A stretch of DNA of 64,000 nt from Phallusia mammillata (GCA_965637545.1 OZ281497.1:17670001-17734000), one strand, 5' to 3'. Counted from the first letter of the stretch, positions 1-13,100 are shown. Program-made: numbers and translations. Notes: generated by a model from the letters alone, not told the origin.

Positions 1-604
1 GACCCAGAAGACACGATTGTCCAAGCCTTCAAACTGCTTGACCCTGAACAAAAGGGAGTCCTCCACAAAGATTAGTGAGTTTCGCTGTCCAAAACCAAGT
101 ATTTTTCAATTATGTGTAACACGACTAACATTATGTACTTTCACAGTATTTCCGGCCTTCTGATGTCACAAGCTGACAAATTCACCAAAGAAGAGGTAAG
201 TTTTTAAAATAAATTCAGATATTTAACTCGAACGTATGATAATAATGCTACGCCGCTAGGTGGCAGCAAGCACAAAACATACGAATACCGTCGACCCATA
301 ACAAAACAAAGTTGTTTGAAGTTGGTACATCCGCTAGGGTTCAAACCGTACAAACAGGATTAAACCAAATGTTATCCAAGTTTGAAATGTAATGCTGTAA
401 TCATGGTTTTAGTTGTTGCGATTTTCAATCCAACTTAAAAGTAGTCGTTTGGCAAGTATGAACCCAAATTTACTTTAACAATAAGGCTCATTATTTTATT
501 CACAGATCGATCAAATGCTGGAAATTGCTCCCGTTGATGTTGCTGGTAACCTTGACTACAAGTCACTGTGTTACATCATTACTCATGGTCAAGAGGAGGA
601 GTAG
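1..604 (+). CDS. Myosin regulatory light chain, copy 1 (5'-truncated by the window edge; exons <1-74, 147-195, 506-604)
   Basis: Spliced translation [73 protein letters not shown] is the C-lobe of a myosin RLC. Donors GTGAGT (75) and GTAAGT (196); CAG acceptors ending at 146 and 505; phases are consistent. Confidence 0.95.
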
Positions 605-2567: not shown

Positions 2568-4618
2568 CGACATTAATAGCTTGCGTCCAGTTAGAAACGG
2601 AAAAATGGGAATTGTTTTACTGACATAAAGCTTAAAACAGCAACGTAAGTTATCCCAGTTCAAAAACATCACCTCACACAAATAACTGACAGTGGCAAAC
2701 GCCAGACTTCGCAAAGTGGGTCCAGTAAGATAACAAACATTCACAGATAAACCAACCTGCATTGGCACAGGGATATTGAAGCCACTCATTTTGTGGAGGC
2801 TGCACAATAAGGGACACGTCGGGACGGAATCTACAAAAAATGAAGAAGGTATCGTGAATAGTTTATTTTATGCGATAATTTTTGTACATGTGACGACTGC
2901 TGAAAAGTTTTACTTCTGAACTATCACTGAGATGTGGAATGTTATTTGTAAAATTCGCATAACCAATAGAGCAAAAAAAGGTGCAACAGACTGATGCAAA
3001 ACTTAGACTAATTTAACATCGCAAAGTTACGTTACAGAAAGTGAATCGTTGTAAAGTTAAAACATAATGTTTATCTTTTTTATTATGACGTCATTGTAGC
3101 TAGAAGCAGTAAAGAATTAATCAGTGTAAACATAACAAGGCAAACGGAAGCGTTTGTTTTTGAATGAAATCATTCTCACCTCCTACAAGTAACGATAGTT
3201 TCGAATCAACAGAGCTAGGAACAGCAATACAAGACAAACATTTAATACGCATACTAAGTTGGGGGATACTTGCGAGCTTATTGTTAAATTTGCGTAAGGG
3301 ATCGCCACTTGAAACAAAAGTGTGCCTCTAGCGATAGAAACGTCACGTTACTTGCAAGTTATTATGGGTAAACAATTTAAATAAAAGCGAAAGTTAAGGA
3401 TTTTTTTACATGTAGATTTGCTGTAAGCCAATATACATGAGTAATAATGAACTGCTCGGATTCGTAATATATACAACGCGTTAAATATATGCCGCGATGA
3501 GTCAAACAAAAAGCGCTTTGTGAATGAAACAACACAGTTTTCAGCGAACTTCCGGCACTGACGTCGACGTTGCAATTTTATCAATGACAGCTGGGCTACT
3601 GGTGGAAATGACGTGCCTTGGTCAATACTAAGACAGCGGAATGCATGTATACAAGCAGTATATGTTAAAACACAAATTCCACAAGACTGTATGTTGCAGA
3701 CTATTGTCATTGTCGTAAAATATCATATTCCCAAATGAATTATACTCATTCACTAAGAGTTTCAAACACCAAGCTGGAAATATGACCCTACACAAAAATT
3801 TGGTGGTTCATTCCCGTACGCATTCCATTGTCTGATGAAACTTGATGCGATGATAATAATAATAATTAATCGATGTGGCGTATAACCTTGATCTTTTGGC
3901 TGTAAACTAATACGGGTAGAAATTCATCATTTGTTCGCATCCTGAAACTGTTTATTGTCAACTGATTGATAGACTATTTTTGCAGCGTTCGGTTTCATGT
4001 TAACAATGAGTGATTGGTATTCAGGCGTACATAATAATTGCATTTGCTGCTGCACGGGATAACTTACCCTCCAATTTTTAAACGGTTCGACATTGTGAGT
4101 CCGAATCGGAAGATATCTTAACTGGGGCCGGGTGGGTTAATCCTGTTAGGACAGCACAATACGGATATATAACCGACCATGTGTCTATGCACGCAATACA
4201 GAACATTGTGTTTCGTATGTGGCGACGGCTGTTTGCGTCTACACTCTAAATGCAAGGCGAGCATGTGTTTGGCCGCTCAACGATGCTTGTGACGTAGGGT
4301 AGCAGGTCCCAAGGGATGAAAGTTGTTCGGTCTCTTAGCCACTTATGCGCGCTCCAAGAGCAAACGATAAAGCAAGCAGATGCGGGCGTGTGCTCTCCGT
4401 AACAGCTGTAGCGCCGGTATCCTTAAAAGGCAGCGGTGGTTCCACACACGCTCTCTGATCCCCCTCTGACGAAGAACTAAATATATCGGCACGCCACTTA
4501 GGTCCGTCAGTTTTTCGGTCGTCGAACGATACGAGCCCATCAGTCTAGCTGATAAGCACCCGACGAGCCTTGCAAGGGATTCTGCTGTTTTACCACAGGC
4601 AACTTTTTGCAATCAAAA

Positions 4619-7600
4619 ATGGTGAGTCGCGCCGTTGTTTACCTCGACGTCCGCCCGGTCGTCCGGGCAAGCGGGCGTTAGCTTAGTGAAGGAAGCGGAT
4701 GGTCACACAGGAGAAGTCGTTAGTCAATTTGGGGGTGATCCCGGACAAACACTCGGGCCAAACGTTGATCGTCCTAAGTGATACGTGACATTCGCATATT
4801 GATAAAGGGAAATCGGTAATTGGTAAAGACGGCAACCACAAACAACATTTTAATTGTGACAGCTCTATACAATTTATGGGCTAAGGCAGATTTGACAGCA
4901 CATTTATTCTGACCGAAAAAAGTTACAGCGCTTGTAAACGAGAAAATTTTCCGCACAGGCCAGCCGTAAAACAAAGAAGAAGGAAGGGAGCAAGCAGAGG
5001 TCGCATCGTGCAACTTCCAATGTCTTCTCTATGTTCGATCAATCCCAAATCCAGGAGTTCAAAGAGGTTTGTTGCATGTATTGATTTGCTTGCCCCACCA
5101 AAAAAAAGCGAAGAGTGGCATGTCGGGCAGAGTTTTGCTCGATGTTTGCAGCGGTTGGTGTTGGGATGCGTGACGGTGTGTCGTGATCCGGTACGTGACG
5201 CTCAATGATCGATACCCACCCAGTGGGTGCACAAAGGGATAATATTTTGTTACGTTTCGCCCGCCACTGCCAACATTGACATGTCTATCCCATCCAGGCA
5301 GGGGGGTAGGGACGCCTCGCCAAAGCAGAATCACTTTTAACGGAAACGACAGCTTTGCTAAGGGATGTTCCTGCATCGGGAGCGTGGATTGATAGGCGCC
5401 TATAATGGTAACCACAAACGCCAGTCATAAATCGCCGACCGGTAAATTTGCGGCATCGCTGCTGATAGCCTAACGTAAACACCGCCCAGGCATAGTTGTT
5501 TACGTTAGGCCCGATCACTGATTCAGTGTTAACGCTTTGCGACGCGCCTGGAAGTTGCATGACAAACCTATAAGCGCGGACTTCGTAGAAACTGTTGAGC
5601 GTCGCAAATACAAAAGGCAGCCCAGCGCTGGAAGAACAACGCATATACGGCGAGCCATTGGCGTAAACAACACGGGTGACTTCATCGTGGCGGCAAATCA
5701 CCACGCAAACACAAATAAACATAGTCCAGTGCTCGGAAGACAGGGAAGGACGTAGCGCCGTAGCGAATAACGCCGGAACTACGTATTCACGGCTGAACCG
5801 CGTACAAGAAACCGGATAACACGACTTGTAGAATTTGGGAAAACCAGGCGATGTTACAAGCAAGCGAAGCTGGTGCCGGATAAAGCGCAACAAAACAATA
5901 CCCGAAATAGAGGCTCGGAGTTTCACAAACCGTTTCAGGCACTTGAAGTGCAAACTTATAGGTGGCTGAAATGCGAACATGAAAGTCGTACGAACGGGTG
6001 ATCAGCTCTGTCGATCTTTATTTTCCGCCATCACATTGTGAGCAAACCGAAACTGGCTCAGCTTCAATTTAACGCAAGCCTGATGTTCCACTGGAACCGG
6101 GCAACAATACACCGGACGCAATAGTGACGTAATGACGTATCTTTAAGTTGAACTGATGCACATGCGCATCCTTTTGCCTTGTGTGCACGCGCTTTAAATG
6201 AAGGCTCTCGGGAAGCATAACTACTTGCTCGGTGGAATTGTTCCCAGTCGCAGAAATCGTAACAGCTTCCTGGAAGCATTATTAAATGGCCTTAGGTTAA
6301 TATAATAATGGCAGTAAACTTATGCAGTGTTCATTAACCTACATTGGTGTTGTTACCTTCGACAAAACCAAACTTTATTTCCTATTTTGCACATTGCGTA
6401 ATGGCTACAAGTTACATAGCTGCGGTGGTTTCTGTGTAAATTCCCTTCACCGAATTCCGAAGTATATCTTTAAACACACTACGATTCGCGCAGGCTTTCA
6501 CCATGATTGATGCTAACAGAGACGGGTTCATCGATAAAGAGGATCTCGCCGACACATACGCCTCCTTGGGTAAGTGCGCCGTGCATTAGGGATTACGCAA
6601 GCCGCGCCAGCTGCGACGAGCAGTGCGGGTGCGGCTTCGTCGGTTCCTTTTAGCCTGTGCTATTTAAACTGTTGTACTAAAATGTAAAAACGGTCACCTT
6701 TATGGCTAAAATGCGTGGATGTGTCAGTGACGTATACCCACGCGCACCGAAATACTTTAAGCGATTGCAACCAAATGTTGATTGCAAATTAATAGGTTAA
6801 ATTTAACATGACCAAAGCAGACTGGAAGACTTTTTTCTATACGATATAAATCGTTTAATTAGGAAACATTGCTATGTGGTAACCGAAACTGCTAGAGATA
6901 GACATGTTTGAGGCATATTTTGGGATACGAATTGGTGTTTCACAGTAGGAACTGAATCTAAAAATGAAGCACTAAGTTTTACGACGGTCTGCTTAGGTCG
7001 TGCTGTTGCCGACGACAAAATAGCTGCCATGCTTGAAGAAGGCAAGGGGCCAATCAACTTCCAAGTGTTCCTCGGAATGTTCGGTGACAAAATATCGGGT
7101 AAACCAATTTGTCACCGAAATGCCCCATGCAGCCATTCCATTATTTAATACGTCATTCACCAGTCAACAGATTAACTTATTGCGTCGCCACATTTTCCAC
7201 AGTTCAAAGTCCAAGAACAAGCGTTTTGTTGTTGTACGCAGAAAAGTACAAAACAAAACCGCGTTCTGTCATAACGTTTCACTTCATTTGTCATAAGCAT
7301 CATTGTGATTTGCAAAAAAACAGGAACCACCAGAAGTGACAAAGATCTTGAAGAAATGCTGCAACAGGCGCCTGGTCAACTTAACTTTACAGTTTTTCTG
7401 TCTATGATGGGTGATAAGATTAAAGGTAGCCACGAAACTTAAACTACGCCACTGTTCAAACAGAATGCAACACATAAGGCGGAAGGTTTTGTCCATTATT
7501 ATCAGCGAACACAAACCAAATGAACACAAATGCACGCTTATTTCCGTTTTTGCATGAAATACTACATCACAGATGCGCAACAGAATGTCGCGTTTATATC

Positions 7601-8195
7601 GAAGCCCACAAATTCATTTTTGTCGCAAATTCACTTTGTAAGTTTTTATTACTTGATATAAAGCGTGTTAATCACTTTACGTAACAGGTACGGATCCTGA
7701 GGAAACAATATTAGCGGCGTTCAAGCTTCTTGATGCAGATGACAAAGGGGTGCTTAATAAGAAACTGTAAGTTTGTTTTTGTGTAGCGATATTTATGTTG
7801 ATAGTTTTACTAACGTCAAAAATATTTTTAAGGCTGGCTGACATCCTGACAACTCAAGCTGACCGGTTCAACACATCTGAGGTAAACATTGTAATGTCAG
7901 AAATAATAAATTTTTCCCGGGCGAAAAAGATCTCTTTTGGTAGCCGACAAAGGAGAAGTTTGTCGCGTGCTTTTGGCAGCCTGCAATACCGGAAATAAAA
8001 TACATATGTTTCCTGGTGAAAGTACGCATTGTGTAGCACAGAAGAAAACATTTTGTGGCACTTTCACCTCATGTAACTTCCTTGTTTTGATCTCAGCTTG
8101 CCCAGATGTTTGAAATTGCTCCCATCGATGCAGCCGGCAACCTGGACTACAAGTCGCTCTGTTACATCGTTACGCACGGCCAGGAGGAGGAATAA
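4619..8195 (+). CDS. Myosin regulatory light chain, copy 2 (exons 4619-4621, 4959-5066, 6494-6569, [6997-7098 or 7324-7425], 7688-7766, 7833-7881, 8097-8195; 171 aa with one alternative exon)
   Basis: ATG-only first coding exon followed by GTGAGT. Translation [63 protein letters not shown]/.../[15 protein letters not shown].../[19 protein letters not shown]. Canonical EF-hand 1 loop [12 protein letters not shown]. All junctions are GT-AG and in phase; 516 nt total. Confidence 0.95.
6997..7098 (+). CDS. RLC copy 2 alternative exon 4a (EF-hand 2 region)
   Basis: TTAG|GT CGT...ATA TCG G|GTAAAC; encodes [35 protein letters not shown]; 102 nt, phase 1-1. Confidence 0.85.
7324..7425 (+). CDS. RLC copy 2 alternative exon 4b (EF-hand 2 region, homologous to 4a)
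   Basis: CAG|GA ACC...ATT AAA G|GTAGCC; encodes [35 protein letters not shown]; 102 nt, phase 1-1; aligns without gaps to exon 4a. Confidence 0.85.
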
Positions 8196-10192
8196 ACAGC
8201 CAAACCGGATCAAATAGACTCGTCGTGCGCTTTGCGTACGTCGCAAATCCCTAATATTTTAAAATTTATAGTTGTACGTTTTGTTGCTCAATTTCGGACG
8301 GGGTCATCCCCAAAGTGAAAACGCCCCGCACCTTATATGTTTATGCTTTGACGTGTCACACCCCTTACTCTACTCATTGTCGCAGGTTTAGCGAGTCGTT
8401 ATATGAAATAAGCCTACATGTTTGGACTACACCACCGTTTAAAGTCCCACGTTAAAGGAGCATGCTCAGTCGGACAGGCTTTCTGTATCGTTTTGTCAGG
8501 CAATAAAAGATTTAACTGTTGTCGGGCGCTTGCTTGGCCGGTGTTGGTGGGCCAAGATGGAAGCGCGGGGGTCGGTGTGATCTGTAGGAGTCTTGCCCAC
8601 TTGCAACCTCGCAGGAAATCTTGTCGCTGTGGAGAATTCTTTCCAAATCCAAAACCCAAAACAAGATGACACATGCACTGTGCAGACGGTGTTGGACAGT
8701 GAAGGTGCCGCGAGAACCACCAGCTGCGTTAGTACTGCGCAGCGTTTGGAAATTAGAGATAAAGGAAAACTCTTTTCCGCTCATAGGGTTTTAAACGGCC
8801 GGTGAATCAACGCACGACGCCGAATATCGATCATACGCATTATATAGGTGGGATCGGGTATATTTGAAAAACAAATCGTTTACTGAAAACTTAAAATAAT
8901 AAGAGCCAATCTGTATTTTTTGAAAACCCACTGCTAAAAATGAGCAAAAACGATAGCGATGTTCGAAAATTCGACGCCGTTAAATGGGTGGCTGTCACTG
9001 ACATAAAGAGAAATTAAATGATAACTGCAATGTGGTAGGAGCAAAAAAGATACAGCCACAGAGCAGAGCAAGAGAAAAAAGACAAGACGAAGCACTTCCG
9101 CTGCGCGCACGCTTCCGCTTTTGAATTTTCACAGCGATTGGTGCGCGGCTTATTGTTACGCTCCCTGCTGCGCATGAAACGTTGGGAAGGTAAATGTTGG
9201 GGCGTGATGAAGCGGCGAAACTGGCGGGGCGGGCTAATCGGCGCCCAATATTTTCGCAATGGCGGGATATTTACAATCCGTAGTCCTCTAACGTGGTAGT
9301 GTTGGAAATAGATGTGTGGTATATTTGCCGCACACTTTCGGTGGTTTTGTTCACTAATGTAATCACACAATGAAATTGTATGGAGGCGTTACAATACCAT
9401 GATCAGTATAGGCGGCTCTCGCTGCTGAGAGCAACGAGGGCACGTTACATACGCAAAAGGAAATGAGTCGACGTGCAGCAGGCGAAGGCCGGTAGCGTAC
9501 GAAGAAGCGCACACGCACAAAGATGGGCGCCCAGCAGCAGCAGAATAGTATAGGCAGCCGGTTGCATGCAAATGGTTGGTAAGCGAGAGATAGATCGCAC
9601 AGCAGCATATGTCGCCATCGCGACTGCGGAACAAAGGCAGCGGTAGAGCAGAGGCCGGCTGCGACAAACTGCAGGACAAGGTGGATGTTGGCAATGCGAC
9701 CAACTAATAATATTTTTTTCTTGATTTCATGTTCACGCAGGTTATGTAAGATAGAAAGGTGGAGAGTTTGCTGGTAAACTGCGAATGGCATCTTCACGCA
9801 CGTGTATTTAATTAACAGTTTTTGCAGCACAAAAATGAAATAAAAGGTAAGCTAATAGAATCTTTATACAATTACATTTGCAAAACGAAGGACACATTTA
9901 CAAACTTTTAAACAAAGATAAAGAAACGTCAATAAATGGGCAGGAGCGATATTAACTAAGAGCAATAGCTCCAATTGTTCCGCGTTTATGTAACGATTTC
10001 AATGTATTGCAATATTTTGTTTTCTATTGCGCAGTTTTTTCCTGTAACATGAATGAATCAGGAAGACCGTGCAAAAAAGCAACCCAACCATAACGTACTG
10101 AAATTGGATGTATATTTGAGCGCTAAAAAGAAAGAAAGTCGCAGAAAAGCGGGAACTTCACGTCCAAAAAAATTTGCGGTTTTTAGAACAAA

Positions 10193-13100
10193 ATGGCCGA
10201 GACGGCATCTTTGTATGGAAGCAACCTCGGTCTTAACGGGTGTGGATCATTGGACATTGGAAACAACGTAAGCTGTAGGAACAACTCCTGCTCGGTTTTG
10301 CACCCGCTCGAATTCAACGAATCGCCAGTCGACAAGAAGCCGTCTGTGGGTGATACGCCAAGCGGCGGAGGTGTGCAGATGATTCAGCTTGACACGGTCC
10401 GTTCGCGAAAGGCCGAACAACCTAACATGAACAGTTGCTACAGTTTTCGAGGTGCAACTTTTCCGTTCGGGACGTCAATGCCTGATGGATCTTTTGACGG
10501 TAGTTTAGCGGGTCTTCCAGACAATGAGTCCTCATCCCAAGTTCATCACAGTGGCAAGGCGTGGGAGTCAGCTCACAAGTTTGAGTCTATGTCTCGACAA
10601 AGCTCTTGCAGCGGTTTTTCAGACCCTGGAGCCGACCTCAGCACGAACGGGCCACCCATCAGCGGCCCGTACGTATCGCACCAGCAGTCGGGGGCACCCT
10701 TCCCGTCAATGTTCGCCAGTTCCTGTCAGTTTGAAACGCAGCCTACCAAAGCTTACGAACCGAACATTCAACCGCTAGGGACAAGTCGGGATCCTCGTAA
10801 TGTAATTCACACCAACTTCATGTACGGCGATCGACAAGTTGCATTGGGCTCCGATTATCGCATTCTTGAATCCTCACCAGATGGTGCGCTTTCTTCGTTG
10901 TCAAAGCAAGCAGATTTTGACTGGAACATGCGGCGAAACAGTTTGCATTCAGTATCATCCGGACGTTCAAACTCTAGTTCTGGCCTAACGCCGAACGGCC
11001 GTTTGCCATCGCCAGATCAAGACCAATCGGTGCTACAACAAATGTACCAATTCCCCGATCAGTGTGCGCAAGAGCCCAGTCTTTCGCCCCTGTTAGAATG
11101 TATTACAAGCATACAGGACGTGCCGACCAGTCATAGCGTCGATAGCAACCAGATTCCTAGTCCTGTGGACGGTCTGCAGTGCAGCATGAAGGAGCGAGAC
11201 TTTTTTGGCAAATCTAACGTGTTTTGTTGGGACAATTTGGGTCCGAACTACAGCGATCAGAAATCCGTTACATTTACAAGCCTGGCTGACATTAGTCGGT
11301 CCGAATACGTGAACATGGAAACCTCATCGCAGGCCGAGGACTCCTATAATGTTTACGGCAACATTCGTGATCAAAACTTCATGGGGGTGAATGAACAACA
11401 TAGCGTTGGCGCACAAACTCAGTTGACTACGGACGGAAGCATGACGTGCATCGGCAGCCAAGACGACGGTAGTTTCTCCAGTAGCCTGGCCTCTAAGTTG
11501 CCGTTACTGCTGTACGTCGGTGGCGTGGGCGAATCTAACGATGAACAGTCATTTTCCGGTTTCCAAACGCAATATGGCTCAAGCGGCGCGTCAGCACCAA
11601 ATTCTGCACCCGTAAAATCTGAGACTTTCGATACACATGTGTTCCCAGATAGCAGAATTTCCTTCCCAAACGAAAGCAGGTCTGTTCCCATTGCTTCGTC
11701 CTCGTACAAAGGGCATAGCCACTTGCAAGATGAAGAAGACAGCCGATCGCCAATAGACGAGAGCGAGGGTTTGGGCGATGCCAAGGGCAACCAATTGGTG
11801 CCGGTGCGCTCCAATGAGGACGAGGATGGCAGCAGTCGGCCGCCATATTCCTATTCGGCGTTGATCGCCCTTGCCATACAAAGCAACCCGCGGAAGCGCA
11901 TGACTCTACGGCAAATCTACCACTACGTCACCACGTACTTTCCGTTTTACAAAAACAGCAAAGCAGGGTGGCGCAACTCGATTCGACACAACCTCTCACT
12001 CAACGACTGCTTTAAGAAGGTGCCACGCCACGACAGCGATCCGGGAAAGGGAAATTACTGGACTCTTGATCCTGGTAGTGAAAAGATGTTCGATAATGGA
12101 AACTTCAGGTAAATAGTTGTGCGTATTTTTTAACGTAATTCAACCCATGATTTTAATTTTCAATTGCTGAAATGATATCAGCCGCTCATGGGAGTGCTTG
12201 AAAAAATCCGACCCGAAATTCGCACAATCAGCGAAGTCAAGTTACTTTCACTTGTACAGCGCTTGTGGCATACCAATTCAGTCGTCACCACATACGCTCA
12301 ATCATCCTGCATTTCCATTGGCTTGTGTCGCGAACTGGCCAGGCAGGAAGCAGATAACGAACGGAAATGTGACGCTCATTCGAACTGTTACGGCTAGCAC
12401 GTAACCGGGTCTACAAATCCGGCTGCCGTTCGTGCGATTTACTTAGTATTCTGTGACGCATCCATCCTATTCTGTATGGCATTAAGACTGGGTTAGGGAT
12501 TAACACAATTCACTCTCCCATCAAGTGAAAGCGAGTCGACTCTACGGCTGTTAAGAGCGATGTGCCGTGTGTCTCTAAGCCTTTGTCTATGTTAACCTTA
12601 CTTGCAGTTGCACCGCACACCTATGTGGTCCGTACTGATAAAACGACGACGGATGTTGATCGTGGTTTAAACGTGCTACCCGAAAACGAAATTACGTTAC
12701 CGTTTTAATATTACCACGCCCAACATTTGTTAGTTGAATAGTGAACATATTTGAGATCGATTTATTTTCGTTTTTCTTTGGAATGCCATGATATTAGTTT
12801 GAAAACAGATTTGAGTTGCAATTAACACAAACCAAGAAAGAATGAATTTCGTCTGCAGTTGCCTTTGGTAACGACGCAAACGCTTTACAAATATTGTATT
12901 GACATGAACAGCTTCATTTAACCAAAAATTGTGTGTATGATTTTATGTACATGATTGTACTAGCTAATATTTAATGTAAAAATGAAGTCGCCTTGTTCTG
13001 CTTAGAAGCTACATTTATCAGTGTGTCTGTGCATGGTATAACTTGAAATAAACCCTTCCCTTCGTCAAAATATCGAATTATTTCACTACAAAGCCTCTGT

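Follow-up and report, generated by a model that had tools for sequence, protein, structure and literature searches.

Mutually exclusive exons are known from several contractile-protein genes, among them vertebrate MYL1 (MLC1/MLC3) and tropomyosin, and the isoforms of the scallop myosin regulatory light chain (RLC) probably arise by splicing. Vertebrate RLC diversity comes from separate genes (MYL2/5/7/9/10/12/MYLPF), whereas in the tunicate gene of the same family described here a single gene swaps one exon. In the arthropod myosin heavy chain, mutually exclusive exons have been traced to tandem exon duplication (PMC2257972). The tunicate locus resembles that system in its homologous exons, which lie next to each other, agree in length and phase and appear one per transcript, and it shares with contractile-protein exon systems the property that one gene supplies isoforms supplied elsewhere by paralogs; it differs from the arthropod gene in belonging to an RLC and in having an array of two members. 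Reviews of tunicate muscle genes name Mrlc1-5 without mention of exon 4 splicing (PMC6589888, PMC4417934).

We analyzed a 64-kb stretch of the Phallusia mammillata genome (64,000 nucleotides, GCA_965637545.1 OZ281497.1:17670001-17734000; hereafter the window) containing an RLC gene with two successive versions of its fourth exon, here termed exons 4a and 4b. We conclude that 4a and 4b are very probably a real, ancient and mutually exclusive exon pair, derived from a tandem duplication and accompanied by a conserved third isoform that lacks both. The evidence for exclusive use comes from the mRNAs and RefSeq isoforms of related tunicates; the RLC contig recovered from Phallusia contains neither copy. 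The pair is not new, as it is already recorded in the form of RefSeq/UniProt isoforms in four other tunicates. A first-pass annotation of the window had suggested that no such case was described for a chordate RLC, which agrees with the literature, where full-text searches found no paper describing a tunicate RLC exon 4a/4b pair, but not with RefSeq, where the isoforms already stand. To this record the window adds one more ortholog, the sighting of an exon-less transcript and a second first exon. Taken across the sampled tunicates, in all of which the pair is kept, the arrangement means that exon swapping, and not gene duplication, is how one chordate lineage varies a myosin light chain; it offers a natural experiment on the contribution of the second EF-hand in the RLC N-lobe to the regulation of myosin II.

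Structure of the gene and its two exon 4 copies

The RLC gene is complete on the plus strand of the window, with seven exons, a coding sequence from 4619 to 8195, and AG/GT dinucleotides bordering every exon (Table 1). Homology over the full length of the predicted protein places it among the myosin regulatory light chains of the EF-hand superfamily, and the gene is the ortholog of the tunicate RefSeq gene 'myosin regulatory light chain, smooth muscle'. The 171-amino-acid (aa) spliced products are identical to the RefSeq RLCs of Clavelina and Ciona at 147-152 of 171 residues (86-89%), with 77% identity to the orthologous Styela protein, and the closest vertebrate matches, among those listed, are MYL5-like. 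Hallmarks of the family are present, namely a predicted phosphorylatable ...HRATSNVF... motif in exon 2 and one canonical EF-hand 1 loop in exon 3; by homology, the IQ2 motif of the myosin II heavy chain is the predicted binding partner. Exons 3, 5 and 6 (76, 79 and 49 nt) probably have the same lengths in vertebrate RLC genes.

Table 1 Features of the RLC locus and its neighbors, with positions counted from the first nucleotide of the window
Feature	Position	Strand	Description
Tail-muscle-type RLC gene	1-603		Last three exons (3′ end), just upstream of the RLC gene
First exon e1a	2776-2848	+	5′ end is a minimum only; ATG 2840-2842, codes M-K-K; donor GT at 2849
First exon e1b	4538-4621	+	5′ end is a minimum only; 5′ UTR and ATG 4619-4621
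Exon 2	4959-5066	+	Basic N-terminus, RATSNVF phosphorylation motif
Exon 3	6494-6569	+	EF-hand 1 loop; phase 1 end
Exon 4a	6997-7098	+	102 nt, phase 1-1, AG before, GT after
Stem-loop I5	7080-7119	+	Perfect 12-bp stem, 7080-7091 with 7108-7119; 4a donor in the loop
Exon 4b	7324-7425	+	102 nt, phase 1-1, AG before, GT after
Exon 5	7688-7766	+	Run X1 contig joints 6569>7688 and 7766>7833
Exon 6	7833-7881	+	Run X1 contig
Exon 7	8097-8507	+	Coding to stop 8193-8195, then 3′ UTR; contigs extend to 8435, AATAAA at 8502-8507
Forkhead gene	10187-11998		Long ORF with a forkhead domain at its end; ~2 kb downstream of the RLC gene

Sequence and translation confirmed the two 102-nt, phase 1-1 exons proposed by the first-pass annotation, including their AG/GT borders, the 225 nt between them and the peptides that they encode. 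Its product lengths were likewise reproduced by in silico splicing, at 171 aa with one exon 4 copy and 205 aa with both; omission of both copies also preserves the frame and leaves 137 aa. A start in e1a adds two lysines, for 173 aa with one copy and 139 aa with none.

The copies are homologous and diverged, as had been proposed. They agree at 14 of 33 residues and at 50 of 102 bases (49% DNA identity), and the base differences fall 15/11/25 on the three codon positions, the third being the heaviest. In tblastn searches of the whole 64-kb window, each isoform matches the other exon with E = 1e-5 to 1e-7; because of these values, and because a common RLC segment is matched, the likeness goes beyond chance. 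Searched alone, either exon 4 peptide aligns to one common segment of solved RLC chains, at approximately residues 61-94 (E = 3e-7 to 2e-6), and its match to calmodulin is far weaker. Skeletal RLCs give slightly higher scores with exon 4a and smooth-muscle RLCs with 4b, by small margins in both cases. Judging from its position in the solved chains, the segment would span the N-lobe from helix C through an inactive (non-binding) EF-hand 2 loop to helix D.

Conservation of the exon pair among tunicates

The same arrangement, 4a followed by 4b, each of 102 nt with AG/GT ends, was found in Clavelina lepadiformis (L001), Styela clava (L003), Ciona intestinalis (L012) and a Tara Oceans metagenome scaffold from an uncultured marine taxon (L009). 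The genome comparison of both exons proposed in the first-pass annotation came out in its favor, with a 102-nt, AG/GT-bounded ortholog of each kept in Ciona, Clavelina, Styela and L009. Here and at these four other loci, the two homologous exons are neighbors, have the same length and phase, and are flanked by functional splice sites. The intron between the copies measures 132 nt in Clavelina, 130 nt in Styela, ~142 nt in Ciona and 240 nt in L009; at 225 nt, that of Phallusia is longer than in the three annotated species (130-142 nt). In L009 (positions 101-546) this intron is stop-free in the frame of the exons, and for that reason a gene caller produced a 194-aa read-through 'protein' with both exons (P0199).

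A mere error of assembly, or a recent local event without a biological role, is barely conceivable as the source of the duplication, and nothing was found in its favor. Every sampled word of 4400-8600 is present in two DNA runs, the copies are just 49% identical in DNA, and the idea is refuted by cross-species conservation, the same pair being present in four other genomes or scaffolds.

Orthologous exon 4 copies have 18-30 of 33 residues in common, compared with 10-14 of 33 between 4a and 4b. Phallusia 4b is identical to Clavelina 4b at 30 of 33 residues and 4a to its counterpart at 25 of 33, with synonymous sites saturated. Across the exon 4 orthologs of tunicates, pN is 0.05-0.31 and pS 0.66-1.0 (saturated); because pN lies far below saturated pS, both copies are under purifying selection, in line with the earlier claim. 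A tree of the 35-residue segment, whose resolution does not extend to deeper relations, has three monophyletic classes, 4a, 4b and tail-type (support 100/99, 96/90 and 98/96, respectively). In tunicates the 4a class is marked by an NFQ motif and a GDK.SG ending and the 4b class by AP..LNFT and MMG.K.KG motifs, and the class-fixed residues of 4a and 4b are NFQ versus NFT, F versus M before GDK, and S versus K in the penultimate position.

Single exon 4 copies are found in the RLC genes of the hemichordate Saccoglossus (L013) and of a catshark (MYL5-like, L014), and on the basis of this one hemichordate and one shark gene we rejected an origin of the duplication before tunicates. As far as sampled, the duplication would thus be tunicate-specific, and it is an ancient event that took place before the tunicates sampled here diverged.

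Gene order around the locus is kept as well, running from a tail-type RLC through this RLC to a forkhead gene. Ciona resembles the window in having a tail-muscle-type RLC paralog upstream of the exon-pair RLC, and a forkhead gene lies downstream of the latter in Clavelina, Styela and Ciona, a conserved microsynteny. Ciona and Clavelina are like Phallusia in their neighbors, in the 4a-then-4b order, in the two first exons and in the exon-less isoform.

Isoforms of relatives and transcripts of Phallusia mammillata

In RefSeq, the isoforms of one RLC gene differ only in the exon 4 segment and in the N-terminal start. The Ciona intestinalis models combine an MKK start with 4b (isoform X1), with 4a (X2) or with no exon 4 (X5, 139 aa), and an M start with 4b (X3) or 4a (X4). 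Those of Clavelina lepadiformis combine MKK with 4a (X1), with 4b (X2) or with no exon 4 (X4, 139 aa), and M with 4a (X3); those of Styela clava combine MSSQK with 4a (X1) or 4b (X2), and M with 4a (X3). The corresponding start junctions read MKK-ASRK and M-ASRK in Ciona and Clavelina, and MSSQK-ASRK in the longer form of Styela. RefSeq X-isoforms are automated models; several of the Ciona accessions belong to the XP_0021 series, which, by their numbering, we take to be long-standing RefSeq entries. Both exon 4 types are also present in Ciona savignyi (H2YXU8 and H2YXU9). The Halocynthia roretzi 'smooth muscle' RLC (UniRef MLR entry, P0201) is of the 4a type, with NFQ and GDK.SG, like Phallusia 4a; it is a single 153-aa entry, silent on 4b and on gene structure, and was presumably sequenced as protein from adult muscle.

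Spliced mRNAs from marine taxa are consistent with these models. Among the Tara metatranscriptome contigs, L004 has 4b alone and L005-L008 (a set that includes one Logan contig) have 4a alone, the encoded proteins being uninterrupted and 176 aa long; L004 and L005 are ~7% different outside exon 4 and hence represent related populations, not one individual. Mapped onto scaffold L009, the 4a mRNA runs from 4a straight to exon 5, with 4b left out, and the 4b mRNA joins 4b to exon 5; a second marine taxon provides a further pair, P0162 with 4a and P0311 with 4b. Each of the full-length mRNA contigs from marine taxa has exactly one exon 4 copy. The 4a form is far commoner in marine metatranscriptomes, with many clusters and contigs, versus one contig for each of the two 4b forms.

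These data bear on whether 4a and 4b could instead be independent cassette exons, all four outcomes occurring and the apparent exclusivity reflecting sparse annotation. With 102 nt in each exon, skipping or double inclusion would stay in frame, the intervening intron of 130-240 nt is too long for steric exclusion, and the form with both exons skipped is seen in run X1 (below) and annotated in Ciona and Clavelina. However, no double-inclusion protein of ~205-207 aa was present among the matches listed for the three annotated tunicates, in a length window that permitted it, and the marine full-length mRNA contigs hold one copy apiece. We therefore consider independent cassettes quite unlikely and favor a mutually exclusive pair.

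RNA from Phallusia mammillata itself came from a single run, X1 (presumed RNA, Logan contigs, origin sample unknown, depth ~6), no transcripts of the RLC gene being found in runs X4, X6 and X8. A 468-nt contig from X1 matches the window with 0 mismatches and has GT..AG joints at 5066>6494, 6569>7688, 7766>7833 and 7881>8097, so that exon 3 is joined directly to exon 5, with 4a and 4b both skipped. Because the contig is unbroken at the exon 3/exon 5 joint, the exon-less form was the dominant path in the X1 sample. No X1 contig lies over 6938-7501, the region of exons 4a and 4b, at depth ~6; since contig assembly loses rare variants and part of the contigs are filtered out, an absence of 4a or 4b is not established by this run. 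Of the junctions listed for an RNA check by the first-pass annotation, those predicted into and out of 4a and 4b were thus not seen at this depth, and the exon 3 to exon 5 junction (6569>7688) was found in their place. In having the exon-less form alone seen in RNA, Phallusia is unlike Ciona, Clavelina and Styela; since the X1 contig shows neither copy, the use of 4a and 4b in this species rests on orthology. A vertebrate-like fragment (P0016) has the same exon 3-exon 5 join as the exon-less mRNA.

One could argue from the X1 result that in Phallusia a single copy, with 4b the likeliest, has become an unused relic, or that both copies are vestigial and the main product is the transcript without them, given that the sole transcript contig is without both exons and that none lies on 6938-7501. 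That result, however, amounts to one contig at depth ~6 from an unknown sample, whereas open frames and AG/GT sites are kept in both copies, and 4b and 4a remain identical to Clavelina at 30 and 25 of 33 residues while synonymous sites are saturated; an unused exon would diverge. We regard both versions of this argument as highly improbable, and retain the reading of an exon pair in use.

The same run reveals a second first exon, e1a. The X1 contig stops precisely where exon 2 begins, a point at which two upstream exons are in competition. The first, e1b, is given by an X1 contig over 4538-4620 with a GT..AG joint 4621>4959; the second, e1a, by an X1 contig whose loose end of 71 letters is joined to exon 2, the last 30 letters of this loose end equalling 2817-2846, a unique match. 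Depths for the two first exons are similar (3.9 for e1a and 3.1 for e1b). They lie ~1.8 kb apart, presumably under two promoters, and yield N-termini of M-K-K-A... or M-A..., respectively.

Exclusivity, exon choice and putative roles

The mutual exclusivity proposed in the first-pass annotation holds insofar as the mRNAs and isoforms of relatives carry one copy, but it is not a strict either/or, as an exon-less transcript is seen in the RNA of Phallusia and annotated in Ciona and Clavelina. We propose that an ancient tandem duplication of exon 4 would have created two alternative versions of the segment at ~residues 61-94, and that the spliceosome would include either 4a or 4b to give RLCs of 171 aa (173 aa from e1a) that are identical elsewhere. 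Sometimes neither copy is included, with an in-frame form of 137/139 aa as the predicted product, and the two alternative first exons add or omit two lysines.

Exchange of the exon 4 segment may tune the packing of the N-lobe on EF-hand 1 and on the heavy-chain lever arm. A switch by tissue or stage and a changed grip on the heavy chain, as suggested in the first-pass annotation, would be putative roles of the pair. The 4a type of the Halocynthia 'smooth muscle' entry and the far greater abundance of 4a mRNAs in metatranscriptomes suggest that 4a is the abundant muscle form; 4b may serve a lower-abundance (minor or non-muscle) myosin II context. A more ambitious proposal would hold that splicing of this one gene makes the distinction between muscle and non-muscle (or muscle-type) RLCs for which vertebrates have separate paralogs, and at the same time that the conserved exon-less form of 137/139 aa is more than splicing noise, acting as a third isoform in its own right that has half an N-lobe and might be a regulatory or a dominant-negative light chain; this combined proposal we consider rather doubtful.

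As for how one copy is chosen, enforcement by reading frame or nonsense-mediated decay (NMD) was ruled out, 102 nt being a multiple of three, as was steric hindrance, given a 4a-4b intron of 130-240 nt with a plausible branch site ~50 nt before 4b. Incompatible spliceosomes are not supported, all introns being GT-AG. Since neither frame nor crowding can enforce exclusivity and the introns are all of this one type, exon choice would most likely be made by trans-acting splicing regulators. The locus thereby also differs from the arthropod myosin heavy chain in that the frame does not enforce exclusivity and in the lack of a docking/selector structure: no conserved RNA structure of that kind was found across 5 taxa. 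Many mutually exclusive exon pairs depend on regulators, and a missing mechanism of these kinds is therefore no argument against membership in this class.

Several inverted repeats, all of them short, touch the acceptors of 4a and 4b. At the 4a donor, the fold of 7080-7119 (stem-loop I5, Table 1) has a predicted energy of -19.9 kcal/mol (z -3.2), a stability reached by 0 of 200 shuffles. Among the other taxa, Styela alone has a similar hairpin at the 4a donor (z -2.3), and Clavelina, Ciona and the marine taxon do not, which makes two of five taxa including Phallusia. The hairpin thus appears lineage-restricted, and it could damp the use of 4a in Phallusia.
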